A stretch of DNA of 64,000 nt, taken from the sequence record NC_019407.1. One strand, given 5' to 3'. How positions within the stretch are numbered: the first letter of the stretch is position 1; each line of letters starts with the position of its first letter. Below the pieces are notes generated by a model that worked only from the letters and a program-made list of their open reading frames with translations, did not search any database and had not been told where the DNA came from. This document shows, in pieces, positions 18,341-52,645 of this stretch. A program made the translations under genes and the position numbers.

Positions 18341-18356
18341 GTCGTGAATCTTGACA
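18341..18356 (+). promoter_or_regulatory. GANTC/-35 promoter motif upstream of portal
   Basis: GTCGTGAATCTTGACA; one of nine copies. Confidence 0.65.
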
Positions 18357-45926: not shown

Positions 45927-46703
45927 ATGGCGATCCAGAACCCCCATTCCACCACGCCCGGCACCATGCCGCACCTGACGCCCGGCGAGGTCGGCGTCAA
46001 CAAGGCCGACGACATTCTCTGGTTCCGCTCCCAGGGTCGGCGGGTGCCGATCACCCTGAGCGACCTTACCCGCGCCCCACCTGCGGACGGCTATGTGGGC
46101 GCGCCCCTGGCCCTGGAGGGTGGCGCTCCGGTCTGGAACGTCAAGCTCTTGCCGTCCTCGATCGTCGCCGGCGCGGTCAAGGTCGATCTCCCGCCCGCCG
46201 CCGGCCTGCACGCCGTGCCGAGCGTCCTGCTCCAGGGCCTGGGGGCCGATCGCGCCCTGGCGACTAATGATCTGGACCTCACCCCCTTCTACGTGCGTTC
46301 CGATTCCATCACCCTGACCCATTTGGCGTTCAGCGTCCGCTCGGCTGGCGCGCCGGCCATGCGCGTAGGTATCGTCGACAGTTTCGGCGTCGTCCAGGCC
46401 GATGTCCTGGTCGCCGCGCCGGTCGTGGGCGCCAATGTCGTGGCGCTCTCGCCAGTCCTGACCCTCCAGCGCGGGGTTTATCGCACCATCCTGGCGACGA
46501 CGGGCGCGGTGACGGTGGGGATCGCCACGGGCGCGCGCATGGAGCAGGGCTGGGACATCATCGCCGACGCCCCGTCGTTCATCCACGGCTACAGCGGCAG
46601 CAAGAACACCGCCGGCGGCATCGGGAGCCTGCCGGCCTTGACCCCGCGCCGCGCCGCCGTTCCGGGGCAGGATCACGCCGTCCTCCTGCGCTGGACGGCG
46701 TGA
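45927..46703 (+). CDS. Fibre-associated protein (258 aa)
   Basis: ATG at 45927; PHLTPGEVGVNKADDILWF motif; C-domain resembles the preceding two ORFs. Confidence 0.7.
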   Translation: MAIQNPHSTTPGTMPHLTPGEVGVNKADDILWFRSQGRRVPITLSDLTRAPPADGYVGAPLALEGGAPVWNVKLLPSSIVAGAVKVDLPPAAGLHAVPSVLLQGLGADRALATNDLDLTPFYVRSDSITLTHLAFSVRSAGAPAMRVGIVDSFGVVQADVLVAAPVVGANVVALSPVLTLQRGVYRTILATTGAVTVGIATGARMEQGWDIIADAPSFIHGYSGSKNTAGGIGSLPALTPRRAAVPGQDHAVLLRWTA

Positions 46704-46735
46704 ATCTTGACACTCGGTCCAAATGCGGTTAACCT
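46697..46735 (+). promoter_or_regulatory. GANTC/-35 promoter
   Basis: GGCGTGAATC-TTGACA-N17-TAACCT. Confidence 0.7.
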
Positions 46736-46765
46736 GCGCGCTCATCTGGAGTTTCGAGCGCCATC

Positions 46766-47032
46766 ATGGCCGAGCTTGTCCGCATCTATCACCCCGAGAC
46801 GAACGAGCCGTTCGACGTGATCCCGTCGACCGCCGAACGTCTGCGCCTGGGTCAAGGTCTGGACGGTCTGGTGTGGCTCTCGCAGCCCTTCTCCCGCGCC
46901 GCTGCCGAAGAGCCGGCGCCGGAAGCCCCCAAGGGGCGAGGTCGTAAGCGCGTCGCCGCGCCCGTCTCGGACGAAGCCGAAGACGATGGCTGGCGTGACG
47001 CGCCGACCGAGGACGCTTCCGAAGCCGCGTAA
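46766..47032 (+). CDS. Small acidic protein with GRGRKR (88 aa)
   Basis: SD GGAG; composition like 32627..33010. Confidence 0.7.
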   Translation: MAELVRIYHPETNEPFDVIPSTAERLRLGQGLDGLVWLSQPFSRAAAEEPAPEAPKGRGRKRVAAPVSDEAEDDGWRDAPTEDASEAA

Positions 47033-47076
47033 GGCGCTTCCCCGTCCACTCTGCTGAAATTCGGTCTCAGTCCCAT

Positions 47077-47152
47077 GTCGGTCTAGCTCATGGGGTAGAG
47101 CGGCGGTCTCCAAAACCGCGCGTGGCAGGTTCGAGTCCTGCGACCGGCGCCA
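47077..47152 (+). tRNA. tRNA-Trp(CCA)
   Basis: Cloverleaf, loop CT-CCA-AA, TTCGAGT, encoded CCA. Confidence 0.9.
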
Positions 47153-47157
47153 TTTCC

Positions 47158-47232
47158 GCGTCCATCGTATATGGGTTATTGCTTCGCGTTGCCAACGCGA
47201 CGAACCGGGTTCGAGTCCCGGTGGACGCTCCA
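47158..47232 (+). tRNA. tRNA-Gly(GCC)
   Basis: Loop TT-GCC-AA, U73, CCA. Confidence 0.9.
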
Positions 47233-47238
47233 ATCCAG

Positions 47239-47312
47239 GCGGATATAGCTCAAAGGGAGAGCTACTGCCTTCCAAGCAGAAGATGCGGGTTCGAGCCCCG
47301 CTATCCGCTCCA
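47239..47312 (+). tRNA. tRNA-Gly(TCC)
   Basis: Loop CT-TCC-AA, CCA. Confidence 0.9.
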
Positions 47313-47333
47313 AAATTTTCTTCCACGACAAGC

Positions 47334-47362
47334 TTGACAGCCGTCGAGATTTGTGAGAGCCT
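47334..47362 (+). promoter_or_regulatory. Promoter of the Glu/Asp tRNA unit
   Basis: TTGACA-N17-GAGCCT with TGTG extension, same as at 48129. Confidence 0.7.
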
Positions 47363-47370
47363 CAACCATT

Positions 47371-47433
47371 ATGACGCACCTCCTGACCCGTTACGAACGC
47401 GAGGCCACCGGCCTCGATACCACCACCGCCTAA
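47371..47433 (+). CDS. Leaderless 20-aa leader peptide MTHLLTRYEREATGLDTTTA
   Basis: ATG 8 nt after the -10; contains GAA, GAG and GAT codons; followed by hairpin(s) and TTTT. Confidence 0.5.
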   Translation: MTHLLTRYEREATGLDTTTA

Positions 47434-47467
47434 AAGCGGTTCTGGTAACCGAGGCCTTTTGTCATGT

Positions 47468-47545
47468 GGCCCGGTCGTCTAGCGGTTTGCAGGATTCGTG
47501 ACTTTCAATCACGAGAGCGGAGTTCGAGTCTCCGTCGGGCCTCCA
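47468..47545 (+). tRNA. tRNA-Glu(TTC)
   Basis: Loop CT-TTC-AA, CCA. Confidence 0.9.
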
Positions 47546-47568
47546 CCCCCAAAGCCTCCTCTGAGCTT

Positions 47569-47643
47569 GGTGCGTTCGTATATCGGTCAATACTCCGGAT
47601 TGTCGATCCGGCAAGAGGGGTTCGATTCCCCTACGCACCGCCA
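47569..47643 (+). tRNA. tRNA-Asp(GTC)
   Basis: Loop TT-GTC-GA, G73, CCA. Confidence 0.9.
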
Positions 47644-47654
47644 GGGCTTTCCCA

Positions 47655-47813
47655 ATGCCGCTTCAGTCGGGTTCGAGCGACGCCGTCGTCTCGCACAACA
47701 TCGCCAAGCTGATCGACGAGGGCTACTCCAAGGAGCAGGCCGTGGCGATCGCCCTCTCCCAGGCGCGCAAGCCGCGCCGTCCGAAGGTCTCGCGCGGCTC
47801 GCGCCGGCGCTGA
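47655..47813 (+). CDS. 52-aa basic protein [42 protein letters not shown]...
   Basis: Read by eye; PLxxGxS..NI..QAVAIAL pattern of small phage proteins. Confidence 0.7.
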
Positions 47814-47883
47814 TCTCGCCTCGCTAAAGCACCCCAGGTCCCCGGCCTCGTCGTGAGGCCGGCTGCGGTTGCGCGAGGCTTCC

Positions 47884-48108
47884 ATGACCTTTCTTGATCT
47901 TCGTTCGCAGTCGAGCGCCGCGCTCCTGCGCCATGTGTCTTCCCGATCCCCGATGGCGGAAGCGGCTCGCACCGAGTTGCTGACCCGAGGCCTCGTCCCG
48001 CTCCTCACGCGGCACAACGGCTGGCGCCTCGCCCCGAGCGAGCCCTTTCCGCAGCATCTCATCCCGCGCCCCGATCCGCTCGCGAGGTTCACGTGGCGGG
48101 CGGGATGA
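47884..48108 (+). CDS. Hypothetical protein (74 aa)
   Basis: ATG at 47884 after GAGG. Confidence 0.55.
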   Translation: MTFLDLRSQSSAALLRHVSSRSPMAEAARTELLTRGLVPLLTRHNGWRLAPSEPFPQHLIPRPDPLARFTWRAG

Positions 48109-48128
48109 AGATTTTTCTCACGCCGTGC

Positions 48129-48157
48129 TTGACATCCGTCTGAAGTTGTGAGAGCCT
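48129..48157 (+). promoter_or_regulatory. Promoter of the 14-tRNA sub-operon
   Basis: TTGACA-N17-GAGCCT. Confidence 0.75.
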
Positions 48158-48251
48158 GTCCAACGTCACGGATCACGACACTCCTCGGAGTGCAAAAGCG
48201 CGATCCTTCGTTATTCCCTGGACGCCAGCGGGCGTCCGTTCGAGAGCCATC

Positions 48252-48389
48252 ATGTTCGCCTTGTCGCATAACAGCCTGAGCACGAAAGCCGCCTCCCCGG
48301 CGTCGCTTTCGCTTGCCCTGCTGGCGACGGCCACGAAGCCCTCGACCAAGCCGACCACCTCGGCCTCGCACTCGACGGATCACCTCTAA
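48252..48389 (+). CDS. 45-aa attenuator leader peptide MFALSHNSLSTKAASPASLSLALLATATKPSTKPTTSASHSTDHL
   Basis: 41/45 residues are P, T, K, L, H, A or S, the amino acids of the downstream tRNAs. Confidence 0.85.
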   Translation: MFALSHNSLSTKAASPASLSLALLATATKPSTKPTTSASHSTDHL

Positions 48390-48454
48390 GGTATCCCGTC
48401 TCGGGTGCAGGCCTTGGAGCCGCACCCGCTACCAACATCCTGTTGACCTAGCGC

Positions 48455-48491
48455 AAGGCGGCTCCCAGCAAGGAGACCGCCTTTTCTTTTT
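48455..48491 (+). terminator. Attenuator terminator before tRNA-Pro
   Basis: AAGGCGG-CTCC/GGAG-A-CCGCCTT followed by TTCTTTTT. Confidence 0.85.
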
Positions 48492-48503
48492 CGCGTTGAT
48501 CAT

Positions 48504-48579
48504 CGGGGTGTAGCTCAGTCGGTAGAGCGCTCGGTTCGGGACCGAGAGGCCGTGGGTTCGAGTCCCGCCACCCAGACCA
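48504..48579 (+). tRNA. tRNA-Pro(CGG)
   Basis: C1-G72, A73, loop TT-CGG-GA; G2.A71 mismatch. Confidence 0.9.
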
Positions 48580-48586
48580 ACGCCAT

Positions 48587-48661
48587 CGGGATGTAGCTCA
48601 GCGGTAGAGCGCGCGGCTGGGGGCCGCGAGGCCGCAGGTTCGAGACCTGCCACCCCGACCA
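48587..48661 (+). tRNA. tRNA-Pro(GGG)
   Basis: Loop CT-GGG-GG, CCA. Confidence 0.85.
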
Positions 48662-48666
48662 ACAAT

Positions 48667-48739
48667 GCTGCTGCGCCTGGATCGGCGCCGGCCCCTTGGT
48701 ATGGGGAAGTAGAAGGTTCAATTCCTTCCGGCAGCACCA
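48667..48739 (+). tRNA. tRNA-Thr(GGT), atypical D-arm
   Basis: G1-C72/C2-G71, loop TT-GGT-AT, T-loop TTCAATT; C at position 8. Confidence 0.65.
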
Positions 48740-48744
48740 ACAAC

Positions 48745-48814
48745 GCCGATGCCTCTAGGAGGACACGTCTTTCGTAATGACGTCAGGTGGGTGCGATCCC
48801 CACTTTCGGCTCCA
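48745..48814 (+). tRNA. tRNA-Thr(CGT)-like, reduced D-arm, T-loop TGCGATC
   Basis: G1-C72/C2-G71, U73, loop TT-CGT-AA, CCA; 70 nt. Confidence 0.55.
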
Positions 48815-48849
48815 TCAAGATGATCGAGGAGAGATCAGACGAAACAAAT

Positions 48850-48936
48850 GGATGTGTCACCTCAGTGGCGAGAGGACCGGGCTCTTAATCCGGCAGCGAA
48901 AGCTCATCGTGGGTTCGAGTCCCACCACATCCTCCA
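48850..48936 (+). tRNA. tRNA-Lys(CTT) with long variable arm
   Basis: Loop CT-CTT-AA; V-arm AGC-GAAA-GCT; 87 nt. Confidence 0.85.
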
Positions 48937-48941
48937 ATAAT

Positions 48942-49031
48942 GCACGAGTGACCCGAGCGGCGAAGGGCGTCGACTTTTAATCGACTGGGCGTCCAGCCTC
49001 ACCGAGGGTTCGAGTCCCTCCTCGTGCTCCA
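48942..49031 (+). tRNA. tRNA-Lys(TTT) with long variable arm
   Basis: Loop CT-TTT-AA; 18-nt V region; class II-like D-arm; 90 nt. Confidence 0.85.
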
Positions 49032-49037
49032 AAATGT

Positions 49038-49123
49038 GCGAAAGTGGCGGAACAAGGTAGACGCACCGGTCTCAGGTACCGGCGGCTTCGGTCATGAGGG
49101 TTCGAGTCCCTCCTTTCGTACCA
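49038..49123 (+). tRNA. tRNA-Leu(CAG)
   Basis: Class II cloverleaf, loop CT-CAG-GT. Confidence 0.9.
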
Positions 49124-49130
49124 ACGACAT

Positions 49131-49215
49131 GCCGGTCTGGCGGAAATGGCAGACGCAGTGGCTTCAAGTCCCACCGCCTTCGGGCGTCCCGGTTCGATGC
49201 CGGGGACCGGCACCA
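49131..49215 (+). tRNA. tRNA-Leu(CAA)
   Basis: Loop TT-CAA-GT. Confidence 0.9.
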
Positions 49216-49221
49216 CCATGA

Positions 49222-49309
49222 TGCGAAGTGGCGGAATTTGGTAGACGCACCGGCATGAGAGGCCGGCGCCCTTCGGGGCGTGAGGGTTCGAGTCCCTTCT
49301 TCGCGACCA
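49222..49309 (+). tRNA. tRNA-Leu(GAG)
   Basis: Loop AT-GAG-AG. Confidence 0.85.
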
Positions 49310-49322
49310 AAGACGAGATCAT

Positions 49323-49394
49323 GCCGGCCGGCGCAGGCGCGCGGGGGAGGTTGTGTCCCTCCTTGGCTCAGTTCGATACTGAGGGTCGGTTCCA
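49323..49394 (+). tRNA. tRNA-His(GTG), minimal D-loop, no G-1
   Basis: Loop TT-GTG-TC; 7/5 stems; D-arm GCGC-AGGC-GCGC. Confidence 0.7.
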
Positions 49395-49399
49395 GTTAC

Positions 49400-49470
49400 G
49401 GGGTATGCGCAGGGCGCAGGCATCCTTTGCAAGGAAGTCGGGGTGGGTTCGAGTCCCACATACTCCACCA
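49400..49470 (+). tRNA. tRNA-Ala(TGC), minimal D-arm
   Basis: G3.U70 identity pair, A73, loop TT-TGC-AA. Confidence 0.8.
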
Positions 49471-49474
49471 ATAC

Positions 49475-49562
49475 GGTAGGTTGGCTGAGAGGCCTAAGGC
49501 GCCCGTTTCGAAAACGGGAGAACCGCAAGGTTCCGTGGGTTCGAATCCCACACCTACCTCCA
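49475..49562 (+). tRNA. tRNA-Ser(CGA)
   Basis: Long V-arm, loop TT-CGA-AA; U73. Confidence 0.9.
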
Positions 49563-49566
49563 ACAT

Positions 49567-49654
49567 GGATGTATGGCTGAGAGGCCGAAGGCGCCCGCTT
49601 GGAAAGCGGGTGAACCGCAAGGTTCCGTAGGTTCGAATCCTACTGCATCCGCCA
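49567..49654 (+). tRNA. tRNA-Ser(GGA)
   Basis: Long V-arm, G73. Confidence 0.9.
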
Positions 49655-49658
49655 ACAT

Positions 49659-49745
49659 GGTAGGTGGTTCCGGCCTGGGGCCGGACCCGGTTGCTAACCG
49701 GCCGGAGCCGCAAGGCTTGGGGTTCGATTCCTCCTCCTACCGCCA
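49659..49745 (+). tRNA. tRNA-Ser(GCT) with 8/4 fold and 6-7 bp D-stem
   Basis: 8-bp acceptor (one U.U), 4-bp T-stem, TCCGGC/GCCGGA D-stem, G73. Confidence 0.8.
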
Positions 49746-49753
49746 CTTCGATG

Positions 49754-50008
49754 TTGACACCCGCGACGCGGCCTGTCATACGTCACGACAGAGCGAACAC
49801 CCCCCGGCCGGGTTTGTTGTCATACCGGGTCGTCACGCCCCGTCGGGGCTCTAGTAGCTCTTCGTGTGGAGTTTTCCGCCTCCCTCCCAGACAAGGAGGC
49901 GGACCCAACCAACATCGCGATCTCCCGTGATCGTCGGCGACGGGCGCCGTCAGAGACCTTTGCCTGCGCGGCTCCGCTGCGGCCCTGGTCTCGTCCCGAC
50001 CAAATTTT
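49754..50008 (+). ncRNA. Promoter plus candidate structured non-coding transcript(s) ending in CCA-AATTTTTT
   Basis: TTGACA-N17-CATACG; multiple stems; no convincing ORF. Confidence 0.45.
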
Positions 50009-50021
50009 TTCGTCGTGGTGC

Positions 50022-50050
50022 TTGACACTGCGAAACTGTTCTGCTAGGGT
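50022..50050 (+). promoter_or_regulatory. Promoter of the 12-tRNA sub-operon
   Basis: TTGACA-N17-TAGGGT. Confidence 0.85.
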
Positions 50051-50057
50051 TCACGTC

Positions 50058-50156
50058 ATGAGCAAGACCTATCGTCAATTTGTGCGCCAGATTCAGGTCG
50101 TCCGGAATATCCGGGCGGGCCGCTCGCGCATGGCTGACGAAGGGTTCAGGGACTAG
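50058..50156 (+). CDS. Leaderless 32-aa attenuator peptide MSKTYRQFVRQIQVVRNIRAGRSRMADEGFRD
   Basis: ATG 7 nt after the -10; codons 5-19 are all Y/R/Q/F/V/I/N, matching the downstream tRNAs. Confidence 0.85.
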   Translation: MSKTYRQFVRQIQVVRNIRAGRSRMADEGFRD

Positions 50157-50186
50157 GTCCCACACCACGCTCAACCAGCTTTCGAG

Positions 50187-50223
50187 AGGCCCGCCTGGAA
50201 ACCCCAGGCGGGCCTTTTCTTTT
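50187..50223 (+). terminator. Attenuator terminator before tRNA-Tyr
   Basis: 12-bp AGGCCCGCCTGG/CCAGGCGGGCCT followed by TTTCTTTT. Confidence 0.9.
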
Positions 50224-50258
50224 CCCCCTTTCGATCACGGAGATCGCCAAACAGACAC

Positions 50259-50343
50259 GGATGCTTAAAGCTGGAGGGCTCCAGCCGGGGACTGTAAATC
50301 CCCTCTCTTCGGAGGAGTGGTTCGATCCCACAAGCATCCACCA
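50259..50343 (+). tRNA. tRNA-Tyr(GTA) with 8/4 fold and 6-bp D-stem/4-nt D-loop
   Basis: GGATGCTT/AAGCATCC, GCTGGA-GGGC-TCCAGC, GGGGA-CTGTAAA-TCCCC, GTGG/CCAC, A73. Confidence 0.85.
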
Positions 50344-50348
50344 ACCAC

Positions 50349-50424
50349 GGACTCGTAGCTCAGCAGGTAGAGCGCCGGCTTGAAACCCCGGAGGTCGGAG
50401 GTTCGACTCCTCCCGTTTCCACCA
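50349..50424 (+). tRNA. tRNA-Phe(GAA)
   Basis: Loop TT-GAA-AC; two acceptor mismatches. Confidence 0.85.
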
Positions 50425-50429
50425 ACAAC

Positions 50430-50505
50430 GCCCGATGAGCCAGATGGGAAGGCGCCGCCGTGACATGGCGGGATTGAGAAGGTTCGATTCCTTCATCAGG
50501 CACCA
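50430..50505 (+). tRNA. tRNA-Val(GAC)
   Basis: Loop GT-GAC-AT. Confidence 0.85.
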
Positions 50506-50507
50506 AT

Positions 50508-50583
50508 GCAAGTGTAGCTCAGTTGGTAGAGCAGCGGACCGATAATCCGCCCGTCCCTGGTTCGAGTCCAGGCATTTGCACCA
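50508..50583 (+). tRNA. tRNA-Ile(GAT), C33
   Basis: Loop CC-GAT-AA. Confidence 0.85.
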
Positions 50584-50590
50584 ATTCTGA

Positions 50591-50665
50591 TGTGGCATAG
50601 CTCAGGGGTAGAGCGCGCGCTTGATAAGCGTGAGGTCGGGGGTTCGAAGCCCTCTGCCACTACCA
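50591..50665 (+). tRNA. tRNA-Ile(GAT), second copy
   Basis: Loop TT-GAT-AA; U1.U72 mismatch. Confidence 0.85.
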
Positions 50666-50698
50666 GTTTCCAGGCCGGCGGAGATGCGCCGGACCTGA

Positions 50699-50774
50699 TG
50701 GCGTTTAGCATAGTGGGAGTGCAGGGGTGTCACATACCTCGATCGAACTGGTTCGATTCCAGTAACGCCAACCA
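50699..50774 (+). tRNA. tRNA-Val(CAC)
   Basis: Loop GT-CAC-AT. Confidence 0.85.
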
Positions 50775-50779
50775 AATGT

Positions 50780-50853
50780 TGAGGGTTCGTCTAATGGTAG
50801 GACGGCTGGGTCTGGTCCAGCTAATCTAGGTTCGAGTCCTAGCCCCTCATCCA
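50780..50853 (+). tRNA. tRNA-Gln(CTG)
   Basis: U1-A72, loop GT-CTG-GT. Confidence 0.85.
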
Positions 50854-50860
50854 AGCTTGT

Positions 50861-50934
50861 TCTCGGGTGGTCTAATGGTAAGACATCTGGTTTTGGTCCA
50901 GAGGATTGGGGTTCGATTCCTTGGCCGAGAACCA
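50861..50934 (+). tRNA. tRNA-Gln(TTG)
   Basis: U1-A72, loop TT-TTG-GT. Confidence 0.85.
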
Positions 50935-50949
50935 ACTATTTGAATTTAT

Positions 50950-51024
50950 TCCAGTCAATGCACAAGGTGTGCAGCGGCACTGTTAATGCCTGTGAGCCCG
51001 GTTCGATTCCGGGGTCTGGAGCCA
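50950..51024 (+). tRNA. tRNA-Asn(GTT)
   Basis: U1-A72, G73, loop CT-GTT-AA. Confidence 0.85.
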
Positions 51025-51050
51025 ACATGCCGGCCTCGGCCGGCACATGC

Positions 51051-51133
51051 GCCCTGGTAACCGAGGGGGATTACGAATCCCTTAGTCGTAGCAGGAGTTG
51101 AAAAGGGTGGTTCGAATCCACTCCAGGGTGCCA
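51051..51133 (+). tRNA. tRNA-Arg(ACG)-like lacking a D-arm, with 22-nt extra region
   Basis: 7-bp acceptor, only TAACCGA before the anticodon stem, loop TT-ACG-AA, normal T-arm, CCA. Confidence 0.65.
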
Positions 51134-51140
51134 AATTCAT

Positions 51141-51223
51141 AGCGCGCAGGCCGAGCAGGATCATCGTCAGGCGTCGCCCTCCGAAGGCGAAGAGGCCCGG
51201 TTCGAGTCCGGGGCGCGCTGCCA
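51141..51223 (+). tRNA. tRNA-Arg(CCG) with enlarged D-loop
   Basis: Loop CT-CCG-AA; 17-nt D-loop. Confidence 0.8.
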
Positions 51224-51226
51224 TCC

Positions 51227-51304
51227 GCGCGGGTAGCTCAATGGACCCAGAGCAGCCGTCTTCTACACGGTGGGTTGGGGGTTCGAGTCCCTCCCCGCGC
51301 GCCA
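51227..51304 (+). tRNA. tRNA-Arg(TCT)
   Basis: Loop CT-TCT-AC. Confidence 0.9.
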
Positions 51305-51307
51305 AAC

Positions 51308-51650
51308 TTGACGGGCGATGTCGAATCGCCGAGGATCAAACCGTAGGCCTCTTCCCGTGGGCCTGACATATACGTCCGCCAGCACTGCCATTCCGCGTCA
51401 GCGGGCGCGGCGCGAGGAGGGTTAACCCCTCGTTGTCGTGCAGCCGGGTGGTGTGGACGTCCCAACGTGATCTTCGAACGCGGCATGCCGTGGAGGGGTG
51501 ATCGGATGGCGAACCAAGGGACACCTCCTTATCCTAGCCTGGGCCGCATGGGGCTCCGCTGGGAGAAACGGCCTGACCCGACCGGAGGTGCGTCCAGGAT
51601 GCCGGCTCTCCATGCCAGAGTCTCGTGGACTAGGGTCTGAAATTTTTTCT
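51308..51650 (+). ncRNA. Promoter plus candidate ~310-nt structured RNA
   Basis: TTGACG-N17-GAGGAT; many nested stems; ORFs have atypical codon usage; ends at TTTTTT. Confidence 0.4.
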
Positions 51651-51662
51651 GGCGCTGATGTG

Positions 51663-51794
51663 TTGACACTCCTCGGAGGCTCGGCTAAAACCAGCAGCGT
51701 CAGAGCGGCGTTGGACCACGAGGTCCGCCGCGAGCTTCTGCGTTGTCGTCAGGAACGGCCCGTCAGCAATCCCGCTGGCGGGTCGTTTCGTTTT
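51663..51794 (+). ncRNA. Promoter plus candidate ~100-nt sRNA with its own terminator
   Basis: TTGACA-N17-TAAAAC; rod hairpin; 13-bp terminator with AATCCC loop followed by TTCGTTTT; no ORF. Confidence 0.55.
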
Positions 51795-51830
51795 GGGCGC
51801 AATGCGACGTTCAGTCCAACCATGGGTAGT

Positions 51831-51869
51831 GTCATGAATCTTGACTTTCGGCGCTTATTCCGGTAGCTT
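51831..51869 (+). promoter_or_regulatory. GANTC/-35 promoter
   Basis: GTCATGAATC-TTGACT-N17-TAGCTT. Confidence 0.7.
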
Positions 51870-51914
51870 GCCCGACATCAGCAAACGCTCACAAGTCGGG
51901 GACCGAGAGCCGTC

Positions 51915-52331
51915 ATGTCGCAAGACCACCACGGCTCGTCCTCGGGCCAAGAACGCATCTACCAGAAACTGGATGAGCTTGGCTCCATGCACGCGCGCAC
52001 CCGTGAAGATATTGCCCGCATCCAGGAGATGATGCGAGCGGTCGGTTCGTCGCAGGAGCGAATCGAAAAGCGCCAGGACCATTTCGAACGCGAAATCTGG
52101 CGCGAGATGGAAGATCGCGCCGCGCGCACGAGCGCCCAACTCGACGAAATCAAGAGCCACACCAACCTGCGGATCGAGGAGATCGAGGCCAAGGTCGACA
52201 CGATCCGCGAAGAGCGGATCGCCGAAAAGGCCCAGTGGCGCGGCCCCGAGAAGGCCATCGCCGCCCTGGTCGCCGTCGCCGGGGCCATCGCCGCCTTCGC
52301 CACGATCCTCACTTTCCTGAAGGGACACTAG
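51915..52331 (+). CDS. Coiled-coil protein with C-terminal TM helix (138 aa)
   Basis: Heptad-rich body; AIAALVAVAGAIAAFATILTFL. Confidence 0.75.
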   Translation: MSQDHHGSSSGQERIYQKLDELGSMHARTREDIARIQEMMRAVGSSQERIEKRQDHFEREIWREMEDRAARTSAQLDEIKSHTNLRIEEIEAKVDTIREERIAEKAQWRGPEKAIAALVAVAGAIAAFATILTFLKGH

Positions 52332-52438
52332 GACTTACAGTCAAGCTTGCGCGCCTGCGGCCAGAAGTCGCGCTTCTTGACACCCGATCTGGGCCGGCAT
52401 AACCATAGGACCATCGTTCCTGGGTGGAGTTTTCCCTA

Positions 52439-52645
52439 ATGGCTGTCGCGCTTACTGTCGTCTCGGTTGAGACCGAATCTACCATCCAAGGTGTTGACCC
52501 CGACGCGGCGCATGTCCGCCTGATCGAGGTTCTGCATACCGCCGCAGAAGCGGGTCTTGGGGAAATGACGTTGGAAGTCAAAGCGGAGATCGCGGCGCTG
52601 CTCCAGCAGGCGTCCGTGGAACTCTCCCACTGCCGGCCGGTGTAG
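52439..52645 (+). CDS. Hypothetical protein (68 aa)
   Basis: Own TTGACA-N17-TAACCA promoter near 52377; SD GGAG. Confidence 0.6.
   Translation: MAVALTVVSVETESTIQGVDPDAAHVRLIEVLHTAAEAGLGEMTLEVKAEIAALLQQASVELSHCRPV

Follow-up and report, generated by a model that had tools for sequence, protein, structure and literature searches.

Leader-peptide transcription attenuators control biosynthetic operons such as his, trp, leu and pheA, and some of them are multivalent, e.g., those of ilvGMEDA (Leu/Val/Ile) and thr (Thr/Ile). The pheST attenuator, whose leader peptide is pheM, controls phenylalanyl-tRNA synthetase. Phage-encoded tRNAs have been described as a counter-defense against tRNA-cleaving systems (PARIS AriB, PrrC and others), in which they replace depleted host tRNAs (PMC10264068, PMC11464382); the subject of these studies is the tRNAs themselves, whereas the leaders analyzed here concern the regulation of tRNA transcription. 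No earlier description of a sensor or attenuator for phage tRNA transcription was found in the literature. Based on our analysis, the two large tRNA blocks of Caulobacter phage CcrMagneto, and possibly its Glu/Asp block, are each probably under the control of a ribosome-mediated leader-peptide transcription attenuator, whose regulatory codons are those read by the downstream tRNAs. This would apparently be the first case of a classical ribosome-stalling attenuator controlling tRNA genes.

The window analyzed is a 64-kb stretch of DNA identical in sequence to CcrMagneto (NC_019407). Its tRNA array spans positions 47077-51304 on the + strand, on which all the features described below are located. 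ARAGORN at default settings identified 24 tRNAs; Thr(GGU), His, Ser(GCU) and two Arg tRNAs were added by relaxed settings or homology with relatives, while visual inspection revealed a second Thr gene and a Tyr(GUA)-like one. Because of these additions, the amino-acid sets that a preliminary description had assigned to the two large units are correct. Unit 0 (Trp, Gly, Gly) is without a leader, and unit 1 (47468-47643) consists of Glu(UUC) and Asp(GUC), both detected at default settings. Unit 2 (48504-49745; ARAGORN, homology and eye) contains two Pro, two Thr, two Lys, three Leu, His, Ala and three Ser tRNAs; it starts with Pro at 48504, and its second Thr(CGU), at approximately 48745-48815, was recognized visually and from its homology to Rogue. 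Unit 3 (50259-51304; ARAGORN, homology and eye) starts with the Tyr-like gene at 50259, followed by Phe, Val, two Ile, Val, two Gln, Asn(GUU), which ARAGORN labeled Ile-AAU, and three Arg.

Promoter-like sites, each with an A/T tract and a TTGACA -35 hexamer, precede units 1, 2 and 3: P1 (47312-47358; -35 at 47334-47339, -10-like GTGAGA), P2 (48107-48153; -35 at 48129-48134, -10-like GTGAGA at 48148-48153), which is kept in five phages, and P4 (50003-50050; -35 at 50022-50027, -10-like GCTAGGGT at 50043-50050), which was assigned as a member of the A/T tract plus TTGACA class. The combination TTGACA-N12-16-GTGAGA occurs only at P1 and at 48129 (0.01 expected), and CTTGACA is enriched (14 occurrences, 13 of them on the + strand, vs 3.8 expected). 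The preliminary description had proposed a sigma70-type promoter for each unit; the -35 element agrees with this proposal, but the -10 element, GTGAGA or GCTAGGGT, is not TATAAT-like, and for this reason a simple sigma-70 scan missed these promoters. From 48129 and from 50022, both large units follow the claimed order of promoter, short ORF, strong intrinsic terminator and tRNA genes. Also as claimed, neither has a promoter-like site between its terminator and its first tRNA, a gap of 12-35 nt that leaves no room for one.

The leader of unit 2 is a 45-aa ORF, gp080 (48252-48389), annotated as a hypothetical protein, and that of unit 3 is an unannotated 32-aa ORF, MSKTYRQFVRQIQVVRNIRAGRSRMADEGFRD (50058-50156); both were assigned by composition and codon match. 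In leader 2, 41 of 44 residues belong to the set of its own unit, P/T/K/L/H/A/S (P=2.7e-12), and two to the other set (depletion P=1.7e-5); in leader 3, 19 of 31 residues belong to Y/F/V/I/Q/N/R (P=5e-4) and six to the other set (P=0.005), with codons 5-19 forming 15 consecutive in-set positions. The use of their own set and avoidance of the other set, previously noted by inspection, is thus borne out statistically. In the six-frame translation of the 64 kb, leaders 2 and 3 are the longest in-set runs and the only listed runs that contain all seven amino acids. Additionally, a cognate leader codon is present for 14/14 tRNA species of unit 2 and 11/11 of unit 3 (P ~6e-4 vs random codons), and coverage is nearly complete in other phages also; with the peptide sequence fixed, isoacceptor coverage is not significant (P = 0.14-0.17). 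Six GCC (Ala) codons of leader 2 would be unreadable by the tRNA-Ala(UGC) of unit 2 under simple wobble rules.

Both leaders are kept in all the Dolichocephalovirinae examined, and their composition, not their sequence, is conserved across genera; in the phages tabulated, the best set match of each is its own unit. Replacements remained within the set in 10 of 11 cases for leader 2 (expected fraction 0.43, P=0.0016) and 13 of 16 for leader 3 (expected 0.26, P=7e-6), compared with 8 of 27 in the control part of leader 3 (P=0.2). The promoter, leader, terminator and tRNA arrangement recurs in relatives, even in the distant phages of Sphingobium and Erythrobacter. Lacusarx and vB_EliS-L02 group their tRNAs differently, in clusters P/M/V/I/A/N, K/G/D/E/R/F and S/Y/L/T/H/Q/C/W, and their leaders, MFNVIAMNNPAPAIMVPVAMA..., ..RFGKRDRREGERGF.. 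and MFTQTTLLTQCHYWQLLSSSSL, match these clusters. A leader AAA codon is found only where tRNA-Lys(UUU) is present (5/5 vs 0/3), and in CcrSC and CcrBL9, in which Trp has relocated to unit 2, leader 2 contains TGG; leader 3 of CcrPW has a Trp codon, although unit 3 of CcrPW contains no Trp tRNA. Leader codons therefore co-vary with tRNA content among relatives, which was the comparison suggested at the outset. Many of these comparisons are non-independent because the phages are related, and the independent tRNA partitions are essentially two, with a small number of single moves in addition. Two tRNA-rich phages unrelated to these, run through the same pipeline, yielded no leader with a comparable match; one K/E/R-rich 53-aa ORF seen there was read as a chance occurrence.

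The short ORFs might instead encode small phage proteins or peptides of the ordinary kind, and the hairpins might be leaky terminators or RNA-stabilizing ends, with the tRNA match a by-product of low-complexity composition and shared ancestry. The hypothetical-protein annotation of gp080, the common ancestry of the Dolichocephalovirinae, and the frequency of A/S/T/P/L-rich low-complexity ORFs in GC-rich DNA, several of which appear in the six-frame listing, agree with this explanation. Nevertheless, we consider it very improbable, given that composition remains constant despite radical replacements (S to K, L to P, F to N, V to R), that leader 2 shows 11 replacements and zero synonymous variants across relatives, that the match recurs in a second phage group with different sets, even for the rare C, W, M and H, and that the antiterminator described below is part of the ORF and changes in concert with the terminator.

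In unit 3, the leader folds into a long hairpin, regions 1:2 (50066-50146; folding z = -4.7 and a 14-phage alignment), whose 5′ arm comprises the regulatory codons and whose 3′ arm comprises codons ~18-30; over the 14 phages, pairing in its helices 2 and 3 is 81-90%, and compensatory changes occur. Terminator T3 (50188-50224), GGCCCGCCUGG-AAACC-CCAGGCGGGCC followed by UUUUCUUUUC, forms a perfect 11-bp stem at 50188-50214 (dG -25.7) with tail TTTTCTTTTC, and its homologous sites are annotated as terminators in phiCbK, Swift, Karma and Colossus; like the leader hairpin, it has the support of compensatory changes in 14 phages. Region 2, the putative antiterminator strand CCGGGCGGGCC (50111-50121), is an 11-nt complement of the T3 5′ arm; the two strands are 91% paired in 14 phages, with four pairs showing compensatory changes, and the complementarity was equaled by 0 of 500 shuffles in five lineages. 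In CcrSC, region 2 and both T3 arms are altered together, i.e., a three-way co-variation. A pairing that competes with the terminator 5′ arm, as the preliminary description had claimed, is present in units 2 and 3, with compensatory support from 14 phages in unit 3. Folding of the nascent RNA allowed the antiterminator to form when a ribosome masked the regulatory codons, but not when it masked region 2. An equilibrium model favors T3 at almost every ribosome position, and the attenuator model therefore relies on co-transcriptional kinetics.

The leaders of units 3 and 2 fold far better than shuffled sequences (z = -4.7 and -5.0, respectively), and an sRNA gene would likewise consist of a promoter, 100-350 nt of sequence and a terminator. 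Moreover, an adjacent promoter-like site at 49754, with no tRNA behind it, precedes ~230 nt without a start codon at the expected transcript start. These properties would suit structured RNAs that are not translated (sRNAs or RNA elements, e.g., processive antiterminators) and whose reading frames are incidental, a reading to which we give little credence in view of the signs of translation. Indels among the leaders of relatives preserve the reading frame, the stop codon stays in place, GC3 is of coding type (0.75-0.89), leader 3 varies by synonymous or in-set changes in its 5′ arm but freely, at the protein level, in its 3′ arm, and the leaders match no Rfam family. All phages have an ATG where the transcript is predicted to start: the -35 hexamer lies exactly 30 nt from this ATG in 10/10 unit-3 leaders measured and in the cluster-C leaders, and the ATG of the unit-1 leader is 31 nt past its hexamer. 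For unit 3, this fixed spacing suggests leaderless, immediately translated mRNAs, and overall the sequence points to leaderless mRNAs for most leaders of units 1, 3 and cluster C.

Unit 2 appears to be a five-segment switch. Segments 1 and 2 (48361-48413) pair the last ~9 codons and the stop with the 24 nt past the stop in a predicted hairpin that encloses the stop codon, which is also found, with another sequence, in Gurke and Bajun. Hairpin H (GGGUGC...GCACCC; 48403-48427) contains the putative antiterminator GGAGCCGC (48416-48423). Terminator T2 (48457-48491), GGCGGCUCC / GGAGACCGCC followed by UUUUCUUUUU, forms a hairpin at 48457-48481 (dG -15.4) with tail TTTTCTTTTT that is invariant in five phages; homologous sites are annotated as terminators in phiCbK, Swift and Karma, while unit 2 of Colossus and CcrSC has no clear U-tract terminator. 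A simple terminator scan listed neither T2 nor T3, and both were recovered by folding. In Magneto and Rogue, masking a ribosome on the regulatory codons allows the antiterminator to form, and masking it at the ORF end does not.

Unit 1 has a leader ORF, MTHLLTRYEREATGLDTTTA (47371-47433), with homologues in all Dolichocephalovirinae examined and GC by codon position of.60/.55/.85. An E-x-E motif is present in 5/6 lineages (CcrSC has one E) and D in 6/6; the match to Glu/Asp amounts to 3/19 residues, an enrichment that is not significant. A hairpin with a U-tract, T1 (GGCCUCG...CGAGGCC UUUUGU; 47410-47462), supported by a terminator annotation in phiCbK, has its 5′ arm within the leader and a U-tract that is poorly conserved in Gurke and Rogue. 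A second CGAGGCC (47400-47406), a copy of the T1 3′ arm, could compete with T1.

The geometry of unit 1 bears on the possibility that leader translation controls the tRNAs in another way, either with the opposite sign, such that efficient translation opens the terminator (a feed-forward link to translational capacity), or via Rho, RNase processing or transcript stability instead of the intrinsic terminator. Since the unit-1 ORF spans the terminator 5′ arm, a ribosome near its end would block termination. In the same direction, untranslated unit-2 RNA is predicted in the read-through fold, cluster C of the Lacusarx type has a strong terminator downstream of the first tRNA, and thermodynamic modeling did not reproduce the unit-2 switch in Gurke and Bajun, where the modeled terminator rarely wins at any ribosome position. 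However, the arrangement of region 1 codons, antiterminator and terminator in unit 3, together with the three-strand co-variation, fits the classical sign, which for unit 2 is supported by folding models in the Magneto/Rogue lineage, where P(terminator) is 0.90-0.99 with the ribosome at the stop and mostly <=0.3 at upstream positions. We therefore regard these other routes as unlikely, though less so than the two explanations considered above.

In the stalling attenuator that we favor, a host-type promoter would start transcription and a ribosome would load immediately; the loading site would be a Shine-Dalgarno-like sequence in unit 2 and, in units 1 and 3, a leaderless AUG. If all codon classes of leader 3 are decoded fast, the ribosome would clear region 1, and the 1:2 hairpin would re-form or the ribosome would cover region 2, such that the 11-bp terminator forms and RNA polymerase halts 35 nt upstream of the first tRNA. 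Slow decoding at any of ~13 Tyr/Arg/Gln/Phe/Val/Ile codons would leave a stalled ribosome on region 1, region 2 would pair with the terminator 5′ arm, and polymerase would enter the tRNA genes. In unit 2, the stop-enclosing hairpin would be opened by a ribosome that has advanced to the final ~10 codons or the stop, hairpin H would then sequester the antiterminator, and the terminator would form; stalling in the first ~34 codons would keep the antiterminator paired. The net effect would be a negative feedback in which limitation of the pool that decodes a tRNA group's own codons leads to transcription of that group.

Sequence and its comparison among relatives establish the candidate parts, the codon match, the co-variation with tRNA content and the predicted alternative pairings. 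The preliminary proposal of a ribosome-stalling attenuator gains in silico support from composition conservation, in-set replacements, the second tRNA partition with its own matched leaders, terminator/antiterminator co-variation, start-codon spacing and masked-ribosome folds, all of which turned out as the proposal predicts. We infer from these that stalling alters read-through, and likewise the direction of the response and what triggers it physiologically. The trigger may be a shortage of tRNAs and not amino-acid starvation, and anticodon nucleases may, as proposed, be connected with it; replacement of depleted host tRNAs could explain the usefulness of on-demand tRNA expression.

Like T-box riboswitches (RF00230), the phage leaders would read tRNA status in a transcription-attenuation leader and select between terminator and antiterminator. 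Nevertheless, a T-box operates without translation, with its specifier codon and T-box sequence directly contacting a single uncharged tRNA, and its targets are synthetase and amino-acid genes, mostly in Firmicutes. An Rfam search of the phage leaders gave no T-box match, and 14 tRNA species are too many for one RNA; a T-box reading was rejected on both grounds. The pheST attenuator likewise applies leader-peptide attenuation to a component of the translation apparatus that belongs to the sensed codon, but it is cellular, senses one amino acid and controls a synthetase protein gene. With the biosynthetic-operon attenuators, the phage leaders share a short ORF near the promoter in which regulatory codons abound, several amino acids sensed per leader, mutually exclusive 1:2, 2:3 and 3:4 hairpins among which ribosome position would select, and an intrinsic terminator just before the regulated genes. 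In contrast to them, the phage leaders belong to a virulent phage, many are probably leaderless mRNAs, and each represents seven or eight amino acids, with as many as 14 isoacceptors, instead of one to three amino acids. They would regulate tRNA genes rather than biosynthetic enzymes, and their output would act on decoding itself rather than on amino-acid supply.

The stretch is identical to Caulobacter phage CcrMagneto NC_019407, with the same coordinates, and carries the tRNA array on its plus strand (47077-51304). ARAGORN at default settings identified 24 tRNAs; relaxed settings yielded additional tRNAs for Thr(GGU), His and Ser(GCU) and two for Arg, and a second Thr(CGU) gene and a Tyr(GUA)-like gene were read by eye. 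At the matching position of unit 3, a Tyr(GUA) gene is detectable in relatives. About 7 of the approximately 31 tRNA genes are missed by the ARAGORN default and the Rfam tRNA model (48667-48815, 49319-49398, 49659-49745, 50259-50343, 51027-51225). Thr and Tyr tRNAs are stated to be absent in the phiCbK genome paper (PMC3556154); this absence appears to be a detection artefact. The two tRNA-Lys genes (48850-48936 and 48942-49031; 87 and 90 nt) have a long variable arm, an unusual feature in tRNAs for this amino acid. In array order, all on the plus strand, the genes form a first unit (Trp-Gly-Gly), unit 1 (Glu-Asp), unit 2 (Pro2-Thr2-Lys2-Leu3-His-Ala-Ser3) and unit 3 (Tyr-Phe-Val-Ile2-Val-Gln2-Asn-Arg3).

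Units 1, 2 and 3 are each preceded by an A/T tract with TTGACA, a short ORF (the leader) and a GC-rich hairpin with a U-tract, followed by the first tRNA. On the plus strand, the TTGACA hexamers of the leader promoters start at 47334, 48129 and 50022, the leader ORFs are located at 47371-47433, 48252-48389 and 50058-50156, and folding placed the hairpins with U-tracts, T1, T2 and T3, at 47410-47462, 48457-48491 and 50188-50224, from 6 to 35 nt before the first tRNA. T2 and T3 consist of GC-rich stems followed by U-tracts, as intrinsic terminators do, and rho-independent terminators have been independently annotated at the homologous sites of phiCbK, Swift and Karma and, for unit 3, also of Colossus. 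The unit-2 terminator is weak or unclear in Colossus and CcrSC, where no clear U-tract is present. A simple consensus scan listed none of the leader promoters, nor T2 or T3; it missed the promoters because their -10 regions are GTGAGA or GCTAGGGT, not TATAAT. Promoters and terminators were assigned instead from motif enrichment, folding and the annotations of relatives. The CTTGACA motif was found 14 times (3.8 expected), 13 of the 14 on the plus strand, and TTGACA-N12-16-GTGAGA occurs only at two leader promoters (0.01 expected). The class defined by an A/T tract and TTGACA has five clear members in 64 kb, three of them the leader promoters, plus a weaker match at 18351. The preliminary description had assigned a sigma70-type promoter to each unit; the TTGACA hexamers and the enriched motif before units 1-3 agree with this, but a TATAAT-like -10 is absent. 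Its order of promoter, short ORF, strong intrinsic terminator and tRNAs in both large units is upheld by folding and by the terminator annotations of relatives.

Several other elements were noted around the units. A candidate promoter within or beyond the terminators (TTGACC at 48443) was rejected; it is not conserved, reading TAGACC in BL10 and Rogue. In phiCbK, gp336 (498 nt, reverse strand; L005:2130-2627) is inserted just upstream of the unit-2 promoter and is absent from Magneto, the promoter and leader being unchanged. A short 'histidyl tRNA synthetase' (~190 aa) is annotated just upstream of unit 1 in CcrSC (L011:621-1199) and CcrBL9 (L012:871-1449). After the last Ser tRNA, a TTGACA promoter-like site at 49754 precedes ~230 nt that contain no tRNA and, where the transcript should begin, no start codon. 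The interval 49754-50012, which may be a small RNA (fold z-score only -2.0), ends in a hairpin and T-tract (49986-50012), and this T-tract doubles as the A/T tract of the unit-3 promoter. Downstream of the array (51305-51800), TTGACG at 51309, after the last tRNA, is followed by ~330 nt unannotated. The best host-type promoter of the region, TTGACA at 51663 with GCTAAAAC, precedes a small U-tract hairpin (~51770-51795) ahead of gp081.

The amino acid composition of the leaders was compared with that of 20 coding-type ORFs of the window, where P/T/K/L/H/A/S account for 43% of residues and Y/F/V/I/Q/N/R for 31%. In leader 2, 41 of the 44 residues belong to the set of amino acids of its downstream tRNAs (P=2.7e-12) and only 2 to the other set (P=1.7e-5). 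In leader 3, its own set accounts for 19 of 31 residues (P=5e-4), 15 of them in a row, and the other set for 6 (P=0.005). Both enrichments and depletions are thus significant, in agreement with the proposal that each large-unit leader uses the amino acids of its own tRNAs and avoids those of the other unit. Among the longest in-set runs in the six-frame translation of the 64 kb, leader 2 reaches 35 residues versus 17 for the next best and leader 3 reaches 15 versus 13; among the runs listed, only these two use all seven amino acids of the set. A cognate codon is present in the leader for 14 of 14 tRNA species of unit 2 and 11 of 11 of unit 3. This isoacceptor coverage is significant against random codons at phage usage (P ~6e-4 per leader) and not significant when the peptide is fixed and synonymous codons are redrawn (P = 0.17 for leader 2, 0.14 for leader 3); therefore, the firm signal lies at the amino acid level, and we claim no selection beyond it, except for the Lys AAA/AAG pattern among relatives. 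A/T-ending codons make up 8 of 31 in leader 3 versus 11% in the genome (P=0.02). In leader 1, with two Glu and one Asp in 19 residues, the E/D enrichment (3/19) is not significant.

The -35 hexamer lies 30-33 nt from the ATG in all ten unit-3 leaders measured, in the leaders of cluster C, a tRNA block of Lacusarx-type phages, and in most unit-1 leaders, with differing spacer sequences. This spacing places the ATG at the predicted transcript start and points to a leaderless mRNA. Caulobacter has many leaderless mRNAs and translates them well. The unit-2 leaders have a 5' UTR of 71-117 nt with AAGGA- or GAGAG-type sites 8-10 nt before the start. Credible start signals are thus present on a promoter-proximal short ORF, as in attenuators. 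Indels within the leader ORFs are multiples of three, the frame and the position of the stop codon are conserved, and GC at the third codon position is 0.75-0.89. Beside these signals, the reading of the leaders as untranslated RNAs, which accounts for part of the data only, is very improbable. In many relatives, an SD-like GGAG and a mini-ORF of 4-5 codons lie between terminator 3 and the Tyr tRNA (L004:4720-4760; L003/L002, alignment A2 columns 283-313; L006:6770-6800; L009:14452-14475); the mini-ORF is ATGAACAACGGxGGxTAG (MNNGG*) in most, MTGGD* in Gurke and MTGN* in RB23, and is lost in Magneto and phiCbK.

The three leaders are kept in all Dolichocephalovirinae examined, including Shapirovirus, Poindextervirus, Colossusvirus, Bertelyvirus and Brevundimonas phages, and diverge as protein sequences across this subfamily. 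The leader 2 peptide, for instance, is MFALSHNSLSTKAAS... in Magneto, MTFSTHKPSTLKPAT... in Colossus, TKLSHKLSLHSTAAS... in Gurke and MTRIHTTLPTAKPAS... in CcrSC, and the tabulated relatives have 33-42 in-set residues of 38-44. In a comparison of five close phages, 11 distinct amino acid replacements and 0 synonymous variants were counted in leader 2. Several of the replacements are radical, such as S to K, L to P and K to S, and 10 of the 11 remain in the set, against a single-base-neighbour expectation of 0.43 (P=0.0016). The leader 3 core behaves similarly: of its 16 replacement states, 13 are in set (expectation 0.26; P=7e-6), F to N, V to R, N to F and N to V among them. In the rest of this leader, the 3' arm of its hairpin, only 8 of 27 are in set (P=0.2). 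The possibility that the ORFs encode small proteins explains part of these data only, and we give it hardly any credence.

The strongest evidence comes from a distant group, Sphingobium phage Lacusarx and Erythrobacter phages vB_EliS-L02 and XM05, because these phages partition their tRNAs differently. Group figures are based on Lacusarx and vB_EliS-L02; the XM05 cluster-C leader was read by eye only, unconfirmed by script. In vB_EliS-L02, the leader before cluster A (Pro, Met-like, Val, Ile, Ala, Asn) is MFNVIAMNNPAPAIMVPVAMACVEGTRD, with 19 consecutive in-set residues; the one before cluster B (Lys, Gly, Asp, Glu, Arg, Phe) reads MTFGRTKRDRREGDERGFTS in that phage and ...FTRFGKRDRREGERGFSL in Lacusarx. 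For cluster C (Ser, Tyr, Leu, Thr, His, Gln, Cys, Trp), the leader is MFTQTTLLTQCHYWQLLSSSSL in Lacusarx, with 20 of 21 residues in set (P=5e-10), and MFTQTALHLLTQTTLCWQCQYSSLSPF in vB_EliS-L02. The partners of K, Q, R, F, V, I, N, E and D differ between the two architectures, and the leaders switch accordingly; for each large-unit leader scored, its own set was the best of six. A failure of leader codons to track tRNA content in relatives had been named beforehand as a possible refutation; the in-set substitutions, and the different partitions matched by different leaders, show that they do track it.

Three smaller observations point the same way. The AAA codon occurs only in the leaders of the five phages with tRNA-Lys(UUU), and AAG is the sole Lys codon in the three whose only Lys tRNA is tRNA-Lys(CUU) (Fisher P=0.018, the lineages not all being independent). 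In CcrSC and CcrBL9, unit 2 ends with the Trp tRNA and leader 2 includes TGG; as co-variation this is suggestive only, because a single W among 38 residues is nothing unusual and CcrPW carries a W without a match. Apart from a contig that represents Lacusarx itself, IMG/VR contains seven more with similar cluster-C leaders. To control for specificity, the automatic search was also run on the unrelated, tRNA-rich phages Moby (Stenotrophomonas) and TS3 (Aeromonas, T5-like) and found no comparably matched leader in either; a K/E/R-rich 53-aa ORF in TS3 was read as an ordinary charged protein. Among environmental IMG/VR relatives (L039, L046, L055, L060, L065), those with a cluster-C tRNA called Gly(ACC) by ARAGORN have a Gly codon in the leader (..LTGS.. 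or ..LTGT..), both absent in Lacusarx and vB_EliS-L02; in two contigs with the Gly codon, no such tRNA was detected.

The ORF of leader 3 folds into a long hairpin (z = -4.7), with the regulatory codons in its 5' arm (region 1) and codons ~18-30 in its 3' arm, followed by a perfect 11-bp terminator. The sequence CCGGGCGGGCC, at codons about 17-22 (region 2, 50111-50121), complements all 11 bases of the terminator 5' arm GGCCCGCCUGG (region 3), and 0 of 500 shuffles were as good in each of five lineages. In an alignment of 14 phages, 83% of cells are paired in the termination fold, with 13 pairs changed on both sides (slid controls, 36-46%), and 91% in the antiterminator helix, with 4 compensatory pairs (slid controls, at most 57%). 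In CcrSC, the three strands have changed jointly (CGGACGGGCC, GGCCCGUCCGA, UCGGACGGGCC). The switch was judged by nascent-RNA folding: region 2 pairs with region 3 when codons 2-14 are masked by a ribosome, and is covered when the ribosome sits at codons 16-27. The full-length equilibrium model, in which the terminator wins at almost every ribosome position, was uninformative; the decision in unit 3 would therefore have to be kinetic, as in classical attenuators.

In Magneto unit 2, the last ~9 codons and the stop codon pair with the next 24 nt and, while this stop-codon hairpin is formed, GGAGCCGC (48416-48423) pairs with the T2 5' arm. According to folding, GGGUGC (48403-48408) is released when a ribosome sits at codons 36-46 and pairs with GCACCC as hairpin H; part of the antiterminator is thereby taken up, and the terminator then forms. 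The modelled terminator probability is mostly <0.25 at codons 2-32 and 0.97-0.99 from codon 36 to the stop, and the modelled switch in Rogue is as in Magneto. In four lineages, the complement of the terminator arm measures 8-9 bp, a quality equalled by 7-35 of 500 shuffles. All the parts recur in Gurke and Bajun with different sequences (stop-codon hairpin, hairpin H, an arm complement 22-39 nt after the stop and terminator), and the thermodynamic model gave no switch in either. Since these two do not switch and Colossus and CcrSC have no clear U-tract, the unit-2 logic is well supported in one lineage only. The pairing said to compete with the terminator 5' arm in each large unit is supported for unit 3 by the 11-bp complement and compensatory changes in 14 phages; for unit 2, the complement recurs in four lineages, but the modelled switch is confined to Magneto and Rogue. 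In unit 1, the ORF overlaps the terminator 5' arm. In cluster C of the Lacusarx/Erythrobacter phages, a strong terminator lies beyond the first tRNA, Ser-CGA (L016:6068-6240, L015:6121-6300, L010:222-400), and a hairpin directly after the leader stop carries a loop, CUGACGC, complementary to the 5' arm of that distant terminator; from these sequences, a tRNA gene seems to lie inside the putative attenuator.

Based on sequence and modelling, the leaders of the two large units, and possibly that of unit 1, are probably leader-peptide transcription attenuators that gate the tRNA operons, with negative feedback from decoding of the codons of the same tRNAs. The main rival, which retains a coupling to translation but with opposite sign or a different output, is unlikely. 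More tentatively, the leaders might constitute a multiplexed ribosome-based gauge of decoding capacity: a tRNA block would be switched on only while its own codons are decoded slowly, and the phage would thereby replace exactly the depleted tRNA groups under host shut-off, high late demand or attack by tRNA-cleaving defence nucleases. Such a unit-specific, on-demand counter-defence circuit, conserved across CbK-like phages of Alphaproteobacteria, we regard as possible rather than probable. In the light of recent work on phage tRNAs, the proposed link to anticodon nucleases is plausible as a hypothesis (PMC10264068, PMC11464382).

To our knowledge, the regulation of phage tRNA genes is largely unknown. 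The purpose of these genes has been debated for some fifty years (PMC10264068). If our reading is true, these would be the first attenuators known to control tRNA genes and would far exceed all others in multivalency, each leader covering 7-8 amino acids and as many as 14 isoacceptors; they would also be direct genomic evidence of these phages fitting tRNA supply to decoding demand. The purpose of phage tRNAs would become testable by asking which stress opens which unit, and the leaders would offer a natural set of codon-specific stalling reporters. Small unannotated ORFs beside the tRNA arrays of other large phages would merit inspection.

Rfam cmscan of 46500-52500 (E<=1) returned only tRNA-type and chance matches, with no T-box or other leader family; readings as a riboswitch or a T-box, which would have a specifier loop and T-box sequence, were therefore dropped. 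The Rfam analysis in the phiCbK genome paper lists tRNAs alone, and that paper is silent on how the array is regulated (PMC3556154); the Lacusarx paper mentions predicted promoters and terminators and no leaders (PMC5648845). Full-text literature searches combining phage or viral tRNA operons with leader peptides or attenuation returned nothing relevant, in line with the preliminary description, which knew of no attenuator controlling phage tRNA genes in this way; we therefore judge this a novel form of leader-peptide attenuation. The nearest known systems are the classical multivalent attenuators of ilvGMEDA and thr, together with the pheST attenuator. Classical members regulate genes that make or handle the sensed amino acid, whereas only tRNA genes lie downstream of the phage leaders; because of this difference we say that the attenuator works like the classical class, from which it departs in having tRNA genes as the regulated genes.
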